A stretch of 64,000 nucleotides of DNA from Guillardia theta CCMP2712. Its lineage: Eukaryota > Protista > Cryptophyta. A model generated the notes under the pieces. The model did not search any database. It saw nothing but the letters and a program-made list of their open reading frames with translations, and was not told the origin of the DNA. Positions 9,646 to 64,000 of this stretch are shown one piece after another. Where the stretch lies: NCBI RefSeq assembly GCF_000315625.1, contig NW_005434656.1:231741-295740 (forward strand), in the 5' to 3' direction. A program made the translations under genes and the position numbers. Numbering within the stretch: position 1 is the stretch's first letter; each line of letters starts with the position of its first letter.

Positions 9646-10106
9646 AAGGGAAACAATAATTTTGTTCTAGTACTGCAGGACCATTATAAAATTCCAATGA
9701 CCAGTTATACATCGGAAGCGGTACTGGGACCTCCTTAAAAACTATTTTAAATACAAACATTTTAGCACTACCTGTCAGCAGCCACAGCGCTCCACACAGC
9801 AGGGTTCCCCCTTCCATGCTGGCGAGCAGGGCGCGGCAACGGCTCCTTCCCATCCCCCCTTGTGTCCACCTCTCAATGCTTCCCTTCCCCTGACGTCTCC
9901 TTCCGCGCTCTTTTCTCCCCCCCTGCAGTAACCCGCACTGTCACCCCTTATGACCGATTGGATGACACTCAATCGCACCACTCTTGCTTCCCACTCATCC
10001 TACTAGAAACCTCCCTTCTGCTCTCAACGGTCCCCCCCCTCTCTGTCGTCCATTCCTTCCGTAAGTCAATCTTCCATTGGCCTTCTCCGGTTCCTTGCAA
10101 CGAAGC

Positions 10107-11969
10107 ATGTCCCCCATCAGCGTGTGCGTGACAATAGACAAGAGGAGCTGGAGGAAGCGAAAGGAGGATCGCAAATGCAGCCCCAACCTGAGCACGGACG
10201 GGGTGCTGAATACACACAAGGGGTCGTTTCACAGAAAGCATTCCCTGACAGTGATGGATATCAACCATGCCACCAAGGGTGCGAGCGGCGCTTCGCTCTT
10301 CTACTGTTCTCGGCCTCTGGAGGCAGCTCTGACAAGGAGACCTTTCCAGTTGATCATGCTCGTACTTGGAGGATACAGCCTCTTCTCTTTCTTCGCTTGC
10401 TGGTCCTTCGTACCTCGACATGATCATATCTCCGAGCTCCGTTTCATCACCTTGACTCTGAGAGGAGGCGACGACGTGGCCCTTGCGAGGGTCGGATCGT
10501 TTGGAGCTCTCTTGTATGGCAAAGAGCTTCGCCCGAGCAACGCTTCTCAGAGCGGAGCCATCGTTTCTTTGCAGTACGAGCACACTGTCTCAATGGACGG
10601 CTGGTACTTCACAACCAGCGAAGCTGACAAGCAACTCGATCCGATAAGGTTCCGTGTGGAAGCATATGACGTAGTCAAGGGCAAGTGGAAGGTTGTGGGC
10701 TCGTCAAGCTATCTCGTGTGCGTGAACACGTACATCTTTCTGGACACTCGTTTCCGCACCAACGAGACCCGAGGCTTCCAGCAGGTTTTCCAGGTGCAAG
10801 CGAGGAGCGCTTGGCCAGAGCTGATGGACAAGCTCGTAAGCGCCTTGTGCTTCTTCATCGGAGCTTTTGCTGCTGCTCATGGTCGTGCAGCCTTCGCGGC
10901 AAACTTGGCCGTCTGGACTTGTCTGATCCATGCCGTTGACTTCTTGTTCCTGGCGTCCCAGTCGTGGCTGTTCGGAACCAGGGCAGCGCCAGGAGACAAG
11001 AGCACATACCTGCTCGTGGTGCTCGGGATGGACTGGGTCTTATCCTTCGTTCTGCTTAGATGCCTGAAACAAGAGCATGTCGCTCGATTCTTCCAGATTC
11101 AAGGGTTCGGCTACTTCGTGCTCTTTCTCTACATGCGAGGTAAGCCCACGTTTGGCTCAGCAATCGGGCATGCATACATCATCTGTTCCATCATCTTCTA
11201 TGGGGGCGTGGGGATCTCGATACCGGCTTTCCGCAGTTATGAACTCTGGAGGGCAAAGCGGATGATTCAACCCGACGTGCTGCAGTACGAGGAGCTGTGG
11301 AGAAGATGTTTAAATACTCTCAGCCAACAGCTTGACCAGCTTGGCGAAGTGATCAGGCTCTACGAGAGCGCCTGCTCTGAAGACGGCAGACAGTACGTGC
11401 AGAGCTGTCCGACATCCTCTGGTCCTCTCGTGCCGGTCAAGAGCCTGGAAGAGCTGTACTCGCACAACGAAATCATCTCTGCCATCCTGAGGTCCAAGGT
11501 GCTGACATGGGCTGCGCGATGCGACGGGCTGCTGCATGCCATGGAGGAGCTGATCAGCGCGAGGGACTGCGAGGGCCCTGAGATGATGTCGCTCGTTAGA
11601 TGGAGCCCTACCAAGAAGAAATCGCGGGTTGTGGAGAAGGCCTTTAGGCTGTATCACGGGGACTTGTCAAAGGTTCTAGACGTCGTGAGGGAGTGCATCA
11701 TCTTCAATCGAGTTGAGGACCTGAAGGAGTGTATAGAAGAGATCTTCCACGACGAAGACATCGAGTTTGTTCGCATCAAGAACCGTCTGAGCAAAGATCA
11801 CTGCGCGCAAAGCACTGGAGGCTACAGGGATGTGCTGTTGAACCTGAGGCTCCGCTCGTTCATCTTCAAAGTTGTTGAGGTTCAACTTATCTTGCGGGAG
11901 TTCTCAGAGCTCAAGAGCGATGAAGGGCATGCGCGATACGTACAATACAGGAACTGCCTCTGCTCGTAG
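10107..11969 (+). CDS. Intronless multi-pass membrane protein with C-terminal RelA/SpoT-like (RSH synthetase-type nucleotidyltransferase) domain
   Basis: Single long ORF (first ATG 10107). About 6 hydrophobic segments. C-terminal motifs KKKSRVVEK, LDVVR, IKNRL, GGYRDV, VEVQL, GHARY occur in the order of RSH synthetase motifs. Confidence 0.78.
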   Translation: MSPISVCVTIDKRSWRKRKEDRKCSPNLSTDGVLNTHKGSFHRKHSLTVMDINHATKGASGASLFYCSRPLEAALTRRPFQLIMLVLGGYSLFSFFACWSFVPRHDHISELRFITLTLRGGDDVALARVGSFGALLYGKELRPSNASQSGAIVSLQYEHTVSMDGWYFTTSEADKQLDPIRFRVEAYDVVKGKWKVVGSSSYLVCVNTYIFLDTRFRTNETRGFQQVFQVQARSAWPELMDKLVSALCFFIGAFAAAHGRAAFAANLAVWTCLIHAVDFLFLASQSWLFGTRAAPGDKSTYLLVVLGMDWVLSFVLLRCLKQEHVARFFQIQGFGYFVLFLYMRGKPTFGSAIGHAYIICSIIFYGGVGISIPAFRSYELWRAKRMIQPDVLQYEELWRRCLNTLSQQLDQLGEVIRLYESACSEDGRQYVQSCPTSSGPLVPVKSLEELYSHNEIISAILRSKVLTWAARCDGLLHAMEELISARDCEGPEMMSLVRWSPTKKKSRVVEKAFRLYHGDLSKVLDVVRECIIFNRVEDLKECIEEIFHDEDIEFVRIKNRLSKDHCAQSTGGYRDVLLNLRLRSFIFKVVEVQLILREFSELKSDEGHARYVQYRNCLCS

Positions 11970-12452
11970 AGGCTCCTTTTTGCCATGTTGTCATTTTGAA
12001 TTTTTCGTCAATCTTGAGGAATCAGCCGATCAGACGCCTAATGTAGGCAAAATGTGCCAAACTTGCTATCGGAGTTGTCCGATTTTGAGATTTTAGATCA
12101 TCTGGAAGCTCTGATTGCGATTTTGAAAAAGCTGTGATTGCGATTTTAAAGTAATGTCGAAAGTATGTTATAAATGAATGAATCACTTGAAATTTGCATG
12201 CCGTCTCCGTCTTACACTGATTTATGTTACACCGATTTGTGTTTGTTCAAATGTTTACTTAGACTACTACTTGATCGATGATTTTAACCAAACAAAAAAG
12301 AAATGCATCTTGACACGATGCAGCTTGTAGCATTTATGATACATCTCTCTAGGTTTTCACGTGGGTGCGTGAAGCTAGCATACACGGGGGACCGCAAGCA
12401 ACAAGAGCATGGACGAGCACGCATGCGGGGCCATGATCACCTGGTCGGCAGA

Positions 12453-13982
12453 TCATGAGTCCTCGATCACGAAGCCTCCTTCAAGAAGCCCCTCGCTCAT
12501 CTCAACTCCATCAGACTCTAGCTCTGCCCTCGTCTTCATCGCCAGCGACCTCCAGTCGATGCTCATGATGTAGATTGACAAGCTCGTGAACAGCAGGAAC
12601 ACTCCCCACACCTGCCCCCACCACAGACCCAGGATGCCATGGCCGTAGTAAAAGCTCATCGTGAGACCCAAAGGGATCCCGATGAGGTAGCAGGCTACCA
12701 GGTTCGCAACCAGCCCCACCTGCTGCTTCCCCGAACCCAGCAGGATCCCGGACAGAGCCCCGTACCCCGAGTTGAACAGGAGGAAGAGCATCAGGGCTGG
12801 CGTGCATCTCGACACCAGGACGAAGGACTCCTCGCCCTGAAGGAAAGATGTCACCCACGTCCCCCTGCTTGCCCACAGGGGGACGATGATGAAGAATGCC
12901 GACAGCAGCGCCAGGAACACCGCCATCCCCGCTGACCTCTGCGCCGCCACCGGCAGCCCAGCCCCCAGCGCGTTCCCTACCCGAGTCCCTGCCGCGATCG
13001 CGATCCCCTCTCCTGTCGCGTACATGAAGTACGAGAAATTCACCAGCACCGTCTGCACAGCCGTCGCTGTCTCCCCGAACGCGCTCCCTACCACTCCCAG
13101 CACCTCATACGACCACCACTCCAGGCACACCATCCCTGCTCCCGTCAGCGCTAACCCCGCGAAGCCCCACAGCCCTGCCTTCGCCCCCCAGCTCCAGCCC
13201 TTCCACGTCTTCTTCTGGTAACCCCCGGCTGCGATCAGCCCTAGGAACACCACGTTCCCGCACGTGTACGCGCACAGCACCGCCACAGGCGCCCCGTACA
13301 ACCCAAGCCCCAGCATGTCCCGCTCGATCAGCAGCCACCCGAACATCCACGTGAACACCAGCACTGCGCATGAGACGGCCGTAATCGGCCGCAGGATCCC
13401 CTGCGCCTCCAGCCACACCTTGAGCAACTGCATCAGCGCCATCGGCGGCAGCGTCAGGATCTGCCAACGGATGAAGCTCCCCGCCATCCCCGCGATCGTC
13501 GGAGCGATCCCGCAGGCATGGAACATCTGCCCTGCAAATAGCCACAGCGTTGAGATAGCCGCCAGCACCACCCCCGCCACCACCATCGCCTGCTGCAGCA
13601 GCAGACCCACAAGCTCGTACTTCCTCGCCCCGTAGGCCTGCGACCCCAGCGTCCCCAGCGCAGTCGACGCGCCCGTGTACACTGCATGCCCGCTCATGTT
13701 GGATAGCATGAAAGCCAGCCCTGCCGCAGCAAGCTCTCGCTCCCCGAGCTTTGCCACGAAGGCCAGGCACACGATCTCCACACCCGTGTCGAGAGCATAC
13801 GAGACGGTGGGGGGTAAGGCATAGACGAGGAAACTCCAGAACTCCTTACGGAGAGCTTGCCCGTCCAAGAGACGTGCCTCAACAGTCTGCTGCTGGCTCA
13901 CTTCATATACCTTGGGTGTTTTGAAAATCTCAAGAATCTTTTTCGAATGGTGCGGCGTTGAACCAGATTTTTGCACGGTCAT
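12453..13982 (-). CDS. MATE-family multidrug/toxin efflux transporter (intronless, 509 aa)
   Basis: About 12 TM segments. Typical MATE motifs: LGERELAAAGLA, LGTLGSQAYGARKY, MVCLEWWSYE, TRVGNALGAG, LSGILLGSGKQ, YLIGIPLG, GILGLWWG. Confidence 0.95.
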   Translation of the reverse strand: MTVQKSGSTPHHSKKILEIFKTPKVYEVSQQQTVEARLLDGQALRKEFWSFLVYALPPTVSYALDTGVEIVCLAFVAKLGERELAAAGLAFMLSNMSGHAVYTGASTALGTLGSQAYGARKYELVGLLLQQAMVVAGVVLAAISTLWLFAGQMFHACGIAPTIAGMAGSFIRWQILTLPPMALMQLLKVWLEAQGILRPITAVSCAVLVFTWMFGWLLIERDMLGLGLYGAPVAVLCAYTCGNVVFLGLIAAGGYQKKTWKGWSWGAKAGLWGFAGLALTGAGMVCLEWWSYEVLGVVGSAFGETATAVQTVLVNFSYFMYATGEGIAIAAGTRVGNALGAGLPVAAQRSAGMAVFLALLSAFFIIVPLWASRGTWVTSFLQGEESFVLVSRCTPALMLFLLFNSGYGALSGILLGSGKQQVGLVANLVACYLIGIPLGLTMSFYYGHGILGLWWGQVWGVFLLFTSLSIYIMSIDWRSLAMKTRAELESDGVEMSEGLLEGGFVIEDS

Positions 13983-17996: not shown

Positions 17997-20340
<2,344 letters not shown>

Positions 20341-26916: not shown

Positions 26917-29498
26917 ATGGTTGCGCGACCTGGCAAGAAGAGGAAAGTGAACGACGATGATGATGAAGTTAAGGTGAGCGAAGATACTGAAATGTCTTCG
27001 AACATTCATCATCTCAAACATTATGCCGCTCATGCTCAACATCATGTTCAATATCATTATCGATAACAGCATCATATTGTCACAAGCATCACCATTGCCT
27101 TGTAAATGTATCTTACAGTCACACCCTCCTTTCTTTTCTCCTTCAGGTCGTCGACGACGTCTTCGAGACCTGCACTTCTGCTCAGCATGAGGTCATCAAC
27201 CTTGCCGCCAGCATTGCTGCCAGGCGAGCAGAGCTCGAGCAAGAGAAGGCCAAGATGCTCTCCGAGAGCTTGCGAGAGCAGGGGATCAAGCAGGAGAAAG
27301 ACTCTCTCCTCTTGCTCAGACCCAGCAGCATCGTGAAGCTAAACGTCGGAGGCACCAAGATTGATGTCAAGCGCAGCACAGTGACTGGCTTCCCGTCGAA
27401 GCTGAGGTGGATGCTAAGGTGAGCTGCGGGAGAGGGCGCGAGACGGGGCTGACTGACGTCTGTGGCGGGCTGGGGAATCAGCGGGCGGTGGGATCACGTC
27501 TACAAGCATGACAGCGAAGGTCGGATCTTGCTGGACTACGACGCCAGCTGGCTGGAGCCTATCATCAACTACCTGGTAACCTCCTGGGAGAAAGGGAAGA
27601 AGGCGTTTGAGGCAAGGGAGGGGAAGGAGAAGCAGAGTTGAGAAAGGCGCAGAGGAGAGAGCGATCTGACTAGACTATGGCAGAGAGAGCTTGCCATGCA
27701 GCAGTCGCCGATGCCGATGGAGCCGCCCAAGGTGGATGGGGAGAATGAGATCGGCTTCAGATACCTGACGCGAGCGCTGGGGCTGGATGGTGTGATCGTG
27801 AACAACAAGCAGATGGATGTCGAAGAGGGCCTGCTCAAGTCATGGGCAAGACCACCCATGACTCAGAGCATCGCGTCAGCCGTCGGATGTGGGAAGGAAC
27901 GCTGCGACTTCAAGCTGCTGTACCGGGCCAGCCGAGACGGCTTCTCGATAGGGACGCAGCAGCAAAAGTGCCAGGGAGAGTCGAACACCCTGACGATCGT
28001 GCGGGACACTGACGGAAACGTTTTCGGAGGCTTCTCGGACGCAGCTCGAGAGTTTAACGGCAGTTACTCGAGGTCGGGGAAGAGTTTTCTCTTCAAGCTC
28101 TCTTCCGGAGAGATTCAGGACCCAGCAGGCCTAAAGCTCTTCCGGGTGCTGCCGGGAAAGGAGGAGAAGGCAGTCCTCAATGACCCTCAGTCCTATGCCG
28201 CGTACGGCGATGGTGCGGACTTGCGCATTGCCAACGAATGTCAGAGTTCAGCGATCAGTCGGTGCAACCTGGGGCACACGTATGATAAGTCGGACGGACA
28301 ACCTCACGAGCTCACAGGAGGGAAGCCGAACTTCCAAGTCGCCGAGCTGGAGGTGTGGAAGGTGTCGCTGGAGCTGGACAAGGCAAAGGAGGCTCCGCCT
28401 ACTGCAGAGAGGATCCCTCGTGACTGCAGCAAGGTGCTAGGAGGGCTGACGAAGCAGTTGGACGCGCTCGAGGCCTTCCAGTACAAGCTGCTGACGAGAG
28501 GAGTGGAGTTGTGCCAGGAGGCGCGAGTGCTGGACGAGGAGGCAGAGGACCTCAAGGCGGAGAAGGCGTACATGAAGGAAGTGGCGAAGGCGATTAGTCA
28601 GGAGAAGGTCGTGTTCTTCAACGTCGGGGGTAGGAAGCTCTACACGATGAAACAGACGCTGGCGCTTGTCCAGGGCTCCAAGCTTTACAAGAGATACGCG
28701 AGCGGCAATGGAGAGGTGCCGGAGGGCGACCTGGACGACGACGGAGACATCTTCCTGGACGTGAACCCTTACTGCTTCGGGAAGATCGTCTCGCACCTCC
28801 GGACTCGCAGGCTGCAGGAGAGCCTCAAGGAAGACGTGAAAGGGCTTCCTCCTGCCATGCTCCAGGTCAGGGCCACGGAGGAGGCGTCGTTCAAGCGGAT
28901 GCTGGCCTTCTTCGAGCTGGACTGGGACGAGCTGGAGGGAAGAAACCTAGACCCTCGTCTCCCTGATTCCATCTTCTCCCGCCACTACTCGAAGCTGCAG
29001 CCATACCTGTCAAACTGTACTGTGGAAACCAAGTGGAGGCTCGTCTGGCGAGGCAGCAAGGACGGTTATTCAGCTGCTGAGATACACAAGAAGTTAAGCC
29101 AGCCGGTAGTCCAGCGCCAGCTCGTGATGGTGAAGGATGGGCAAGGAAACATGTTCGGCGGCTTCACAGACGTGTGGCAAGTTGGGGGAACAGGTTACAT
29201 CCATTCGGCTTCCTCCTTCTTGTTCAGCCTTCGTCGAGCAGGACTGACTGATGAGCAATCCTTCAAGATATGTGGTATGAAACCCGGCATGAACAATCAC
29301 GGTATGCTGCTTGGCGACGGCAACATCTACCACTTCGGTCAAAGGGACTTGATAATCGTTACTAACTGCAACAAGAACAGTTCGAGCTCCTGCGGCGGCA
29401 TCGGAAACACCTTCAACAACCATGGCGTACCTCATCTGCTGACTTCAGGAGCACCATCCTTCAAAGTAGACGAACTCGAGATCTGGACTTTGGCCTAG
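26917..29498 (+). CDS. Tandem BTB/POZ (KCTD-type)-TLDc protein: BTB-TLDc-coil-BTB-TLDc (4 exons)
   Basis: BTB1 IVKLNVGGTKIDVKRST (~27330). TLDc1 LLYRASRDGF..GNVFGGF..FQVAELEVW. BTB2 VFFNVGGRKLYTMKQTL..IFLDVNPYCFGKIVSHLR. TLDc2 LVWRGSKDGY..GNMFGGF..FKVDELEIW. Confidence 0.88.
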
Positions 29499-58856: not shown

Positions 58857-61800
58857 ATGGGGAAGAGGAGAAGATCTGCTTTCATTCTGCTCCTCCTGAT
58901 CATCGCAGATGTTCATTGCATTGACATACACCAGTTGCCGCAACAAACTTTGCAAGCTTCATGCGGAGCGGGGTCCGTCAGGCACCCCGACGGTTCTTGC
59001 CTCTGCGACCTAGGCTTCTCCTCAGATCCCTTATCCAACGGTTGCACGCCTTGCCCTCAGGGCACGTACAAGTCCAGCAGGTAAGCAGTTGACCTTCTTC
59101 CAAGACTTATCTGACTCTGATTTGGTAGGGGAGGCAACCCGTGCAAGCAATGCCCCCTTCACACCGTCTCTCTGCTGGGCAGCTCTTCGGTGTTGAACTG
59201 CACATGCATCATGGGACATGAACCTGACCAGACCGCGTCCTTCAAGTGTCATCCCTGCAAGCCTGGGTCATACAAGGACAGCGCTGGCTCTTGGCCATGC
59301 TCCCTTTGCAGTGAAGGAAAGTACAGCCCGGTGATAGGTTCGATAAGCGAGAGCGACTGTAAGCTTTGTCCAGCAAGGACCATCAGCAACAAGGGAAGTA
59401 GCAGCGAGGCTGATTGCGCATGCTCTCAAGGATTCGTTGACTCTGGGACTGGATGCAAGGCCTGTGAGCCTGGAAAGTATTTTCACCTTGTAGGAGTTAT
59501 ACCTCGATGCGTTTCATGCCCTGAAGGCAAGTACAGCAACGTCCAAGGCGCGGCCAACCAAAGTGCTTGTATCGAGTGCCCAAGGTTCTCCACCTCGGAT
59601 CCCGGCAGTACCTCTGTACATTCATGCCGATGCATGCGGGGCTTCGAACGGGCTAACTCTGTTCAACGATTCTTGACTCAGTTTTCCCACAAGTATCTTT
59701 CGAAGTCTCCTCTGGACAAAGCAGTCGATATTCCAAAGGAATCTCCACAGAGTGACCTCTGCACTGCCTGCTCTCCCGGTCATTTCATGCCGGAACATAG
59801 CTCCAAATGTCACAAATGCAAAGCTGGGATGTACTCCAATCAGTCATCGTCAACATTCTGCCATTCATGCCCGCCCAACTCCTGGTCGAAGGCTGGATCG
59901 AAGTCTATCGATGAGTGCACTTGTTACAATGGATATGTCAAGTCAGACTTGTCCCTCTGTGTTCTTCCTGTTGTCGGTGAAGCCGAAGCTTTGAGAAAGA
60001 AGGCAGCTTCCTCTGAAAAGGAACTTTCAGTTCCATCGCAGATCCCGCAGGAGTTGTTTAGTCATGTCAAGGAAGCGACTTTAAGTAAGGTTGCAGTCGC
60101 GCAACCGAAAATGACACGTCGTCTTCTTTCGACTTGCTCCTGTCTGACTCCATGCAGCACTTTCACGACTCCGAGTGGACAGATTTTGACAAGCGATGGG
60201 GACTATCCTGTGAACGACACATGCTGGTGGATTATCGATCCTCCAATTTCGAGTGAAAACGCAACACTGATCATTACGATCGTGCGGTTTGAGACTCAGC
60301 TGAATGCTGATCTCCTCAACATCATGCAGTGCTCAGATCAGAGTTGTAGCCAAGTCACTCCAGTGCAATCGCTCTCTGGCAGCTTGTCAACTCAGGTTCC
60401 TTTGAATCTCGAACTCCTCCTAAGTCGCGGCGTGGTCAAATTGGAGTTCCAATCTAACGATGATAGCGTTACCTTCAGTGGTTTCGACTTGCAATGGAGG
60501 GTTATCTGTAATTGCCAGCAATCCTGCACTGTTCTTGATACCCTGTCGGGCCACGTGGACGTTCAGTGGATAAGTGGATACAGATACTGCAACTGGACGA
60601 TCGCGCCTCCTCTCGACGTGATAGCATCCGGGGGTGAAGGAGCTACACTTCATCTTAATCTAGAAGGTCTCTACCTTCTCGATGGCCTCGGGCGGATCTC
60701 GATATACGAATGCGACGATTGTCTTGCTCAAGTTCCTCGGCTCAGTACGTGATAGACGGCAACCTGACTAACGACAAGCGAAGCTTTGTCTTCAACTCTT
60801 ACATCATCTCCATCAATCTCTGGTCTGAAAGCGTGCAGGGAACCTCTGGTTTGAATTTCTCTTGGCAAATTTTGTATCCATGTCAGAGGGGCTACGAGAC
60901 AGTTGGAACTACTTGTGCTATCTGCCCGCCAGGAAAGTTTTCAGACAGTTTGAATGCTTCTCAGTGTCTTCTCTGTCCACCCGGAAACTACAGCTCTCAA
61001 CCAGGAAGCACCAAGTGCGATCCTTGTCCAGGCAATACGTACAGCTCGGCAGGCCAAACCTCTATATCAGCGTGCAGTTGCAATACCGGCTTTTCTGGCT
61101 TTGACCTCCAAACGTGCTTGCAGTGTGGGGTAGGCAAGTACAAGGCGTTTGTTGGGTTCGGAAATTGTTCCTCATGTCCTCCCGGCACCTTCAGCGATGC
61201 TCTCGCTGCAACCAATGTGTCGTCGTGTCAGGCATGTCCTGAACACAGTGTCTCTCTGCAAGGAGCTTCTTCAATCAGCGATTGTCTGTGTGATTTGGGG
61301 TACGAATTTCATTTGAACTCATCCGATCCTTTCAACGGCACTTGTGTTCCCTGCGTCGAAGGTTACTACAAGGACAATGTGGGATCGCATCAGTGCAGTC
61401 CATGCCAGCCAGGTAACTTCGCCAACTCCAGTGCATCGTCAACCTGCCTTCTATGCCCAGACAACTCTTGGAGCCTAGGGGGATCGGCTTCAATCTTGGA
61501 TTGTGCGTGCAACGCAGGTTTTGAAAGGGTGGGGAGCGAGGAGTGTCGTTTATGCATGTTTGGATATTACAAGGACAACCGGAGTCACGAAGCCTGTAGC
61601 CCCTGTGCTCCCAATTCGACCTCAATTCCTTCCAGGACGACCTGCTGGTGTAATGCTGGGTTCTTCGGGGCCCAGGAATGTTCAGCATGCCCTGTGGGGA
61701 AGTATAAGAATGTGACAGGGCTAGAAAATTGCTCGCTATGCCCTCTAGGCACTTACGCTGATGCCCAAGGTCAACACATCTGTAATGCCTGTCCGCCGCA

Positions 61801-64000
61801 CTCCAACACAACATCTCTTGAAAGTAGCTCAATGTCGGACTGTCTGTGCGACCCTGGTCATTACAATGTGGGAGATGAATACAACATCGAATGCGCAGCT
61901 TGTGAAGTGGGTTTCTATAAGGCAGAAAGTGGATTCCAAGCTTGTCAAGAGTGTCCGGAGGGAATGTACACCTACAGTACTTCGAGCTCTCACTGCAGCA
62001 CTTGCTCAGTCAATAGATTCTTGCCATACGACTGTCAGTGCTCTCCGGACTGCAAGGAAGTGGTTTATTCTGAGCTGAATGCTACTCTCAGGAATCAGAT
62101 CGAGGTGTTCGAAAACACGTCGTACAACTGCGAGACTCTGTGGGAAGGCTTCTGGATCGTTCCGTCGAGGTATCCTGACTTGTTCGTCAAGGCTCTCAAG
62201 GGGTTGGGAGCACACGAGGGGTTTTACTTCACCGGGCAGCAGTGGGTCGACTCGTCATCGCGACACTGGTGTCACGTCTGGAACTACAGCACCTTTGTGA
62301 ATCACTTCCTGATCGAGTTCGAAGGAGCTCAATTCAGCTGCTCCAACGACGTCATTCTCCCCGTCCTCAAGCAGGCGTTTCAAGCCGAGTCTGTGGAACA
62401 GATCGAATGTAACTTGACCATCGTCTACAACGTCAGCAACGTCTTGCCGGGGCTCAGACCTGAATACCTGGACAGCCTGTTTGAGGGGATCTCTGAGATC
62501 CTGCGCTGTACGCGACCGCAGCTGAGAAACATCACCTTGAGTCAAGAGGTCATCGCTACGAGCCCCAACTCCGGGACCAAACAATTCCATACGCTCTGCA
62601 AGGATGCCGCTAGATCTATCTGCATGCGATGCAACAACAACAGCTGGTTCAACTCGACCAACGGCGTCTGCATGCCTTGTTCGTGCCCTGCTGGACAGTA
62701 CTTAGCCCGACCATGTAAAGGACAAGACAATGGCTGTTCTCCCTGCGACCTCGGGGTGATCTGACCTGATTCATTGCAATCTTGTATTGACGATGTGAAA
62801 TAGACTTACTCTTCCAGCATGGTTGGAGCATGCACCAAATGTCCTCCTGGAAAGTGAGTAGAGTTTCAAGGTCATCTCAATGTTAGCTGACGAGCATGAT
62901 CAGGTACACCGACAGGCTGGAGTCTAAGGGTTGTGACGATTGCGCCGCTGGATATTCGTCAGCCCCGGGAGCATCTTTCTGCATCCAGTGCGCCATCGGG
63001 TTCTACACGGATGAACCTGGTCAGCTCTGCCGCCCCTGTGAGGCTGGATACTTTTCGATGCCTGGCGACTCGACGTGCACGGGATGTCCTGCAGGAACGG
63101 CAAAGTCAGTGACGGGGAACGGCATGTGCTCGCCCTGCCGTGCGGGCACATGGTCGCAAGCGAACGCGAGCCACTGCAAAGCTTGTTCTGTCGGCACCTT
63201 CTCAACGTACGGAGCATCAATCTGCCAGATGTGTTCTAACGGGAAGTACACCAACGTCACAGGTATGGCAACTCGTGTTGTGTCCTTGATTGAAGAATCT
63301 TGAGCAGGAACGAGCGTCTGTTACGACTGTCTGGCGGGGTTCGATTCCGATGAGAGCAGAGTGTCCTGCCAGGACTGTCCGGCGGGAAGCTATAGTATGT
63401 CTGGACATGCATGTGAGCTGTGCGAGCTGGGCAAATACTCGAATGCCAGTGGAATGACGACTTGCATGTAAGCAGCATCTTTGCTAACCCTTCTTTTCTC
63501 ACTTGCCGTGCAGGGCATGCGATGCTGGAAGGACTTCGTTCACCTTGGGCTCGATCAATTGCTCGGATTGTCCGCAGGGAACATTCAGGAGTGACCTAGG
63601 CAGCAAATACTGCAGTCCTTGTCCCCCGGGGACCTCAGGGTTGGAGCTCGGTGCCAGCCAGTGCCCAGCTTGTCCCGCTGGAACTTTTTCACCTGGCAAC
63701 ACGTTCGAGTGCGCTGGATGCCCGGCCGGAACTTTTTCTACGCAGAATTCCTCCGTCTGTTCCTTTTGCCCGCTGGGGAAGTTTTCAGACCAGGTGAACA
63801 GGACCTCCTCCTCTGACTGCTCGCCTTGCGAGGCGGGAACATCGTCGGACTCCCTTTTTCAGTCATGTGTCAACTGCCCAGCAGGAGAGTACTCCTCTGC
63901 TCAGACAGAGTTTGTCTGCACTGCTTGCCCGGCGGGAAAGGTCTCCCTGTTCCCCGGCACACAGTCGGCGCAAGGCTGCGTCCCCTGTAACGCGAGCACA
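58857..64000 (+). CDS. Very large Cys-rich secreted/surface protein with ephrin-receptor-like (GCC2/GCC3) repeats and two CUB domains; continues past window end; 1-nt frameshift at ~60720
   Basis: Signal MGKRRRSAFILLLLIIADVHC. Dozens of CxxCPxGxY/F repeats. CUB motifs YPVNDTCWWII..FETQLNADLL..FSGFDLQW and YCNWTI..SGLNFSW. Confidence 0.88.

Follow-up and report, generated by a model that had tools for sequence, protein, structure and literature searches.

RelA/SpoT-homologue (RSH)-fold alarmone synthetases are familiar from plastids and from bacteria, where they serve as stress enzymes or as toxins. The 2025 literature still has every characterised member either acting in the cytoplasm of bacteria or being exported from them (PMC12691689). 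The small synthetases RelP (SAS2) and RelQ (SAS1) are soluble bacterial homotetramers making (p)ppGpp, and Tas1 (Apk1), the (p)ppApp synthetase of the Pseudomonas aeruginosa type VI secretion system, is a soluble secreted toxin that is paired with an immunity protein and has no transmembrane (TM) region or ectodomain. The long plastid-type RSH proteins of plants and algae (RSH1-4, CRSH) combine an HD hydrolase with a synthetase domain, with or without TGS, ACT or EF-hand domains, and have no TM helices. An earlier note on the DNA described here had held that characterised eukaryotic RSHs are soluble plastid proteins; a restriction of eukaryotic RSHs to plastids needs qualifying, as RelA_SpoT effector domains have been reported at the N-terminus of fungal NOD-like receptors (NLRs) (PMC4986451). 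Here we describe a gene in a stretch of 64,000 nucleotides from Guillardia theta CCMP2712 (assembly GCF_000315625.1, contig NW_005434656.1, positions 231,741 to 295,740, forward strand; hereafter the window, numbered from its first letter), whose product is a known enzyme fold in a eukaryotic membrane-receptor architecture that is without description in the literature searched. No paper on a cryptophyte membrane RSH family was found within the searchable literature, and the only label is the automatic UniRef name "RelA/SpoT domain-containing protein" on some paralogs. We consider it probable that the protein is a receptor-like, membrane-anchored RSH pyrophosphokinase regulated from its ectodomain or from the membrane, with activity, regulation, product and topology all being inferred. 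The protein and its C-terminal domain are encoded as follows.

10107 to 11969, plus strand: coding sequence, intron-free, 620 amino acids plus stop; the identical 620-residue protein is present in a public collection (P0001).
11409 to 11966, plus strand: RSH-synthetase (small-alarmone-synthetase/Tas1-like) domain, amino acids 435-620, from the AlphaFold2 model, Foldseek, VIA-align and profiles.

The earlier note had proposed a RelA/SpoT-type synthetase domain at the C-terminus, and the structural comparisons bear this out. AlphaFold2 was run on an alignment (A1) of 45 domain copies from 25 complete open reading frames (ORFs) and returned the C-terminal 186 residues at a predicted local distance difference test score (pLDDT) of 90.7 and a predicted template modelling score (pTM) of 0.86, with a Pol-beta-like alpha/beta nucleotidyltransferase core plus the RSH-specific N-terminal helices. 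The best 50 matches of this domain in a Foldseek search of the PDB were all RSH synthetases, with Tas1 first (E 4.1e-6), followed by RelP, RelQ, an exported Streptomyces synthetase, FaRel2, Rel, SpoT and CapRel. An independent search of representative structures with VIA-align placed RSH synthetases at ranks 1-11 (Z 12.8-7.8; RelP 12.8, Rel 12.1, RelQ 12.0, Tas1 11.6, CapRel 11.0), the next fold being RsfS/iojap at Z 7.0, with other nucleotidyltransferases at about 5. Since the model is confident and both structure searches rank RSH synthetases on top with a clear gap below, the assignment of the modelled domain to the RSH synthetase fold is secure.

Sequence kinship was seen with family profiles. 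The window protein alone gave blank results against Pfam, NCBIfam and PDB sequences, with no PF04607 match at E up to 10, and the HD hydrolase domain that the earlier note had failed to see is likewise absent from its Pfam and NCBIfam results. Among PDB sequences, the A1 profile matched Tas1 (6ox6, E 5.8e-4) and Bacillus subtilis RelP/YwaC (6fgk, E 1e-3, along profile positions 69-189), and matches to other families did not reach that E level. A wider profile, built on 93 copies out of many cryptophytes, matched Tas1 with an E of 5.4e-5. Sub-threshold matches to Pfam RelA_SpoT were obtained for 11 of the 45 paralog domains (best E 2.4e-4), and one full-length paralog (L017) reached 26.0 bits (E 1.2e-5), the gathering score of PF04607 being 27 bits. 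A homodimer prediction with two copies of amino acids 377-620 scored 0.01, which counts neither for nor against dimerisation.

The residues expected to form the active site are conserved in the order seen in RSH synthetases. Conservation was determined in a set of 185 domain copies, taken from 174 cluster representatives (50% identity clustering) in six cryptophyte genera, and the four motifs are as follows.

11613 to 11639, plus strand: motif 1, K503-x3-R507-x3-K511, putative ATP-phosphate-binding basic cluster, spaced as in Tas1 IKSRERAMQK (K503 99%, R507 91%, K511 100%).
11679 to 11690, plus strand: motif 2, D525-V-V-R528, with the putative Mg-binding Asp, aligned to the RelP and Tas1 Asp (D 100%, R 99%).
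11820 to 11831, plus strand: motif 3, G572-Y573-R574-D575, predicted G-loop with the base-stacking Tyr, aligned to RelP NGYRSLH (G 95%, Y 80% plus F 11%, R 95%).
11877 to 11885, plus strand: motif 4, E591-V-Q593, with the putative catalytic Glu of ExQ, aligned to RelP EIQIRT (E 99%, Q 83%).

The conservation of the Asp and Glu across homologs is as the earlier note had anticipated, and the Ser-to-Arg deviation that it had pointed out in motif 1 is present and follows, together with an Arg three residues past the Asp in motif 2, the pattern of Tas1, where motif 2 reads KDLARN. The family GHxRY motif pairs with EHKIY in the HMMER alignment to RelP. Among the 45 copies of A1, the invariant positions (domain numbering) are K69, K77, D91, D115, R126 and R140, and the consensus motifs are WAxxKxxxRAIEK, TDVVRQxIVF, RIKNRLDP...SGGYRDV..N, CELQL and GHxRY; the window protein carries every near-invariant residue of the family. 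Because the catalytic residues (Asp, Glu, Lys/Arg) are near-fully conserved across the 185 copies, we propose that the synthetase domain is catalytically active.

Tas1 is the best match both by profile (E 5.4e-5) and by Foldseek, and it shares the K-x3-R-x3-K motif 1 and the D-x-x-R motif 2 with the Guillardia protein at 22% identity over 145 residues (Z 11.6), although the HMMER alignment covers only about 41 residues and the Z values of RelP, RelQ and Rel are equal or higher. RelP and RelQ (6fgk, 6ewz, 5ded/5dec) match over the whole domain fold (Z 12.8-12.0, 143-146 aligned residues), with the order of the K/R cluster, D, GY, ExQ and HxxY preserved, but their RxKxxxSxxxK, GYxSxH and ExQIRT motifs are partly replaced in the Guillardia protein. 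The sequence thus points to a Tas1-like enzyme with the acceptor left unfixed. Apk1/Tas1-like structures may make (p)ppGpp, (p)ppApp or both, and some prefer guanylate acceptors (PMC12691689); because these folds include guanylate-preferring enzymes, neither acceptor nor product can be read from the similarity to Tas1. Other toxSAS enzymes pyrophosphorylate tRNA (PMC11782079).

The plastid-type long RSH proteins share with the window protein that they are eukaryote-encoded RSH synthetases. The Guillardia theta genome holds only two such canonical genes (HD_4 plus RelA_SpoT, intron-containing; C47:131263-132737 and C24:131220-132315), which presumably encode the plastid (p)ppGpp enzymes, and both pass the Pfam thresholds whereas the window protein does not. 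A plastid RSH identity of the window protein was rejected on account of its lack of an HD_4 match, its architecture with six TM helices and the canonical genes at other loci. The fungal NLRs resemble it in that a sensor protein of a eukaryote has an RSH-like, non-plastid domain for its output and in that their families are expanded and variable, but they are soluble STAND NTPases with repeat sensors and not membrane proteins. Membrane class III adenylyl cyclases and receptor guanylyl cyclases offer an analogy only: a module of six TM helices, a helical transducer and a cytosolic nucleotide-converting domain, with the long Guillardia paralogs repeating the synthetase domain; their catalytic fold is unrelated and no homology is claimed.

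Upstream of the synthetase domain, amino acids 60-440 were modelled with AlphaFold (381 residues, pLDDT 83.5, id mbae738591721), and the model matches the arrangement given in the earlier note, one TM helix, a beta-rich segment and five further TM helices.

10107 to 10337, plus strand: N-terminal basic region, amino acids 1-77 (14 Lys/Arg, 6 Asp/Glu), presumed cytosolic.
10338 to 10403, plus strand: TM1, amino acids 78-99, from hydropathy and helix 19-40 of model mbae738591721.
10404 to 10808, plus strand: beta-sandwich (jelly-roll), amino acids 100-234, from the model, loosely F5/8-type-C or galactose-binding-like, presumed extracytosolic.
10809 to 11234, plus strand: TM2-TM6 bundle, amino acids 235-376, model helices 176-198, 202-229, 240-260, 263-284 and 293 onward.
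11235 to 11408, plus strand: helical linker continuous with TM6, amino acids 377-434, from the model, presumed cytosolic.

In protein numbering the first four helices of the bundle are amino acids 235-257, 261-288, 299-319 and 322-343, and TM6 and the linker form one unbroken helix from amino acid 352 to about 422 (model residues 293-363), in which Y394 is invariant and W398 nearly invariant (at least 90%) in the family. The strands of the beta-sandwich, amino acids about 106-229, are modelled at a pLDDT of about 90. The earlier note had likened this segment to discoidin or F5/8-C folds; the segment is modelled as a jelly-roll and the Atlas shows a weak likeness, but there is no sequence match to Pfam PF00754 and no convincing match in the PDB, the best Foldseek hit of the amino acid 60-440 model having an E of only 0.06. 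A shape search of the Atlas with the whole 381-residue model gave template modelling scores by query of at most 0.33, with rows that include F5_F8_type_C, DUF4457 and Muskelin_N. The beta domain alone matched three Atlas clusters at 0.66-0.68 by query, one of which is 60% F5_F8_type_C and two of which have no common Pfam family, and the feature scores of the domain to F5/8-type-C clusters were 0.88-0.91. An F5/8-C (discoidin)-like fold is therefore plausible for the modelled domain as a weak match. The TM bundle was also compared with known membrane proteins by VIA-align of the same model, which gave TMEM45A at Z 10.3 and rhodopsins and G-protein-coupled receptors (GPCRs) at about 8; kinship with seven-TM proteins or rhodopsins was rejected, as these values lie under the stated noise level for helical bundles.

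We sought an orientation of the protein in the distribution of charges, sequons and cysteines across the 25 complete paralogs. Lys plus Arg comes to 1.4, 1.3 and 3.6 in the presumed inner loops and the flank after TM6, versus 0.4 and 0.8 in the presumed outer short loops. All 25 paralogs have N-x-S/T sequons in the beta domain, from one to five each (N145 and N219 in the window protein), and most long paralogs retain about three Cys in this domain. No signal peptide was seen by eye in amino acids 1-77, a judgement made without a predictor run. The basic N-terminus without evident signal peptide, the positive-inside short loops and the sequons and Cys of the beta domain favour a topology with the beta domain outside and the synthetase domain inside, the C-terminus being cytosolic, and the beta domain is probably extracytosolic and glycosylated.

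The gene lies in a single open frame (10077-11969, plus strand) with its first ATG at 10107, giving 620 amino acids plus stop in the ORF listing. The intronless ORF of about 620 residues that the earlier note had described is indeed one frame with unspliced coverage, and all the strings quoted there (FQLIMLVLGGYSLFSFFACWSF, ISELRFITL, VSMDGWYFTT, DPIRFRVEAYD, WKVVGSS, KKKSRVVEK, LDVVR, IKNRL, GGYRDV, VEVQL and GHARY) are found in the translation.

9793 to 12192, plus strand: approximate transcript (5' untranslated region, coding sequence, 3' untranslated region), unspliced, from run contigs and RNA-seq 3' reads.

The transcript is one unspliced mRNA of about 2.4 kb. It is represented by a contig of run X2 (9793-12192, colinear with the genome), a contig of run X1 (9994-12132) and further pieces in a third run, all with zero joints and zero differences versus the genome and all ending at the gene borders. 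Run X19, which is genuine RNA-seq, has sense-strand 3'-end reads at 11696-12238 without a splice joint. The RNA nature of the three contig runs is a guess, and the firm evidence for expression is the 3' tag coverage of X19, to which the transcript-shaped contigs add weight. Protein sets derived from transcriptomes also contain orthologs, in Cryptomonas, Chroomonas, Hemiselmis, Hanusia and Rhodomonas. The 620-residue ORF is a real, expressed gene, because paralogs and orthologs conserve it and transcript-like contigs and RNA-seq 3' reads cover it; an ORF artefact was rejected on the grounds of expression and conservation. A convergent neighbour at 12453-13982 (minus strand) encodes an intron-free MATE efflux transporter of 509 amino acids (Pfam MatE, E 6.8e-45). 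Its transcript contig is separate from the X1 and X2 contigs, with separate transcript contigs from 12215/12267 onward, the 3' ends of the two transcripts being about 25-100 bp apart, with a poly(T) loose end at 12236.

The earlier note had proposed counting paralogs, and the family proved to be large. In the 87.1-Mb, 669-contig Guillardia theta assembly there are at least 83 matches to the protein. The paralogous genes number at least 45; many of them carry the synthetase domain twice, and tandem clusters occur. Five of the 25 complete ORFs extracted are short (620-655 amino acids, the type of the window gene), and the other 20 are long (about 900-1500 amino acids; loci L013-L032, on contigs C30, C86, C48, C56 and others) and carry the C-terminal synthetase domain twice. 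When the family profile was used in an exhaustive HMMER search, 5333 representative proteins matched at E<=1e-3, 2558 at <=1e-10 and 802 at <=1e-30. Thirty of the best clusters were looked up; all those with a taxon name are cryptophyte (Guillardia, Hanusia, Rhodomonas, Hemiselmis, Chroomonas, Cryptomonas paramecium), and the remainder are metagenome or run assemblies. A word-indexed protein search returned only the query for the protein and for alignment A2, and three matches with A1, which is uninformative given the 5333 HMMER matches. A scan of viral contigs with the synthetase domain found no relatives.

When the 45 Guillardia domains were placed in a tree, the short forms clustered, with support of 99/95 for four of them and 89/32 for all five, and the window gene was sister to a paralog on C66 (domain identity 51%). 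Many long genes have a pair of domains that are mutual closest relatives (for example L019, L021, L023, L024, L027), and between close paralogs the synthetase domain shows less synonymous divergence than the remainder of the gene. Because of this pairing and this lower divergence, the sequences suggest repeated internal duplication or gene conversion in the long paralogs. The nonsynonymous divergence (dN) of the synthetase domain is two to four times lower than that of the ectodomain and TM bundle, with the synonymous divergence (dS) being saturated. Pairwise dN/dS is below 1 in all domains, but dS is mostly saturated, so this is no test of diversifying selection on the ectodomain.

From these data a mechanism can be proposed. 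A basic cytosolic N-terminus would be followed by TM1, an extracytosolic jelly-roll, five TM helices, a rigid helix and the RSH domain. An event sensed by the ectodomain or by the membrane bundle would be relayed through the TM6-linker helix and would control the synthetase activity, and the RSH domain would move the beta-gamma pyrophosphate of ATP onto the 3'-OH of a purine nucleotide, yielding a (p)ppApp- or (p)ppGpp-type product. In a wider form, which we put forward tentatively as something short of an even chance, dozens of receptors with variable ectodomains would each trigger a Tas1-like pyrophosphokinase in the cryptophyte cytosol, with (p)ppApp, (p)ppGpp or pyrophosphorylated tRNA as the result, which would serve for second-messenger signalling or for an innate-immune shut-off of growth or ATP. 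Several observations weigh against the proposed receptor-enzyme. Replacements affect the RT of ExQIRT as well as the S and H of GYxSxH, and the chemistry could differ; the window protein by sequence alone has no Pfam, NCBIfam or PDB match; the F5/8-C match of the ectodomain is weak; and the matches of the TM bundle (TMEM45A, rhodopsins) are in the noise range for helical bundles. In addition, no stand-alone HD_4 hydrolase was detected in the Guillardia theta genome, HD_4 being found only in the two canonical genes, and the lack of a dedicated hydrolase family in this search is unusual for a reversible second-messenger system.

The same HD_4 result suits a role in defence or in self/non-self recognition, in which a virus, a grazer or membrane damage would lead the Tas1-like domain to poison its own cell, through ATP depletion by mass (p)ppApp synthesis or through pyrophosphorylation of the tRNA CCA end. 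By sequence and by Foldseek the best match is the toxin Tas1, with CapRel and FaRel2 among the other matches, and abortive infection by bacterial toxSAS and CapRel systems provides a model (toxSAS mechanisms in PMC11782079), as does the RelA_SpoT effector domain reported in fungal NLRs (PMC4986451). Such a role also agrees with the size and lineage specificity of the family, with its tandem clusters and with its pairing of a rapidly changing ectodomain and a conserved enzyme domain. Fusions of look-alike domains with TPR or ankyrin repeats are seen in the Atlas for other protists, which is a lead only. On the other hand, the dN/dS of the ectodomain is never above 1, though with saturated dS, and an immunity or antitoxin partner is not evident. 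Expression is apparently constitutive and of appreciable depth in ordinary culture transcriptomes, which does not discriminate between signalling and defence. We regard this self-poisoning scenario as possible but less likely than the main reading; a defence or toxin-like role is as plausible as one in second-messenger signalling.

It is much less probable that the C-terminal domain is a pseudoenzyme or a nucleotide-binding regulatory module of a transporter- or channel-like protein with six TM helices, devoid of pyrophosphokinase activity. The replacements of RxKxxxS by KxxxR, GYxSxH by GYRDV and ExQIRT by ExQL, together with the failure of the window protein against Pfam PF04607, would fit such a module, but the active enzyme Tas1 shows the same replacements, and a dead enzyme would not be expected to keep its Mg-binding Asp, its catalytic Glu and its phosphate-binding Lys/Arg at 99-100% over 185 copies. 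An inverted topology, with the synthetase domain outside or in an organelle lumen and the beta-sandwich in the cytosol, recalls the exported RSH enzymes of bacteria (PMC12691689), with 8vx3 among the fold-search matches, but is very improbable in view of the strongly basic 77-residue N-terminus without evident signal peptide, the positive-inside short loops with the very basic flank after TM6, the beta-domain sequons in 25 of 25 paralogs with about three Cys in the long forms, and the supply of ATP, which is cytosolic.

Elsewhere in the window, myosin head and kinesin motor domains are seen as partial matches within separate ORFs, which fits exon fragments of intron-containing genes, unlike the single-ORF synthetase gene. 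A 600-residue ORF at 27696-29498 (plus strand) carries a TLDc domain (E 1.8e-40) plus a BTB_2 domain, and two adjacent ORFs at 59190-62764 (plus strand), rich in Ephrin_rec_like/TNFR cysteine-rich repeats and with a weak match to NCD3G (the nine-cysteine domain of family-3 GPCRs), probably belong, as exons, to a single large surface receptor of cysteine-rich type. The stretches 18187-18691 and 19403-19839 hold an (AT)n microsatellite with about 252 units and about 13 repeats of a 33-bp unit (96% matches), which are flanked by CTC/CTG-rich low-complexity arrays and account for the dip in GC content (0.37) and the strong skew at 18-20 kb.

Taken together, the receptor-like RSH pyrophosphokinase that we propose, if true, would extend the biology of pyrophosphorylated nucleotides to the eukaryotic cytosol by way of about 50 expressed, conserved membrane proteins, which would be a candidate site for making such nucleotides outside plastids. 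The cytosolic domain is small (186-244 amino acids) and well modelled, so that its chemistry is directly testable. The family would then add a receptor-enzyme or an immune effector of a new type; receptor-enzymes with an RSH fold would be seen here for the first time, and so would a eukaryotic alarmone synthetase system outside plastids.

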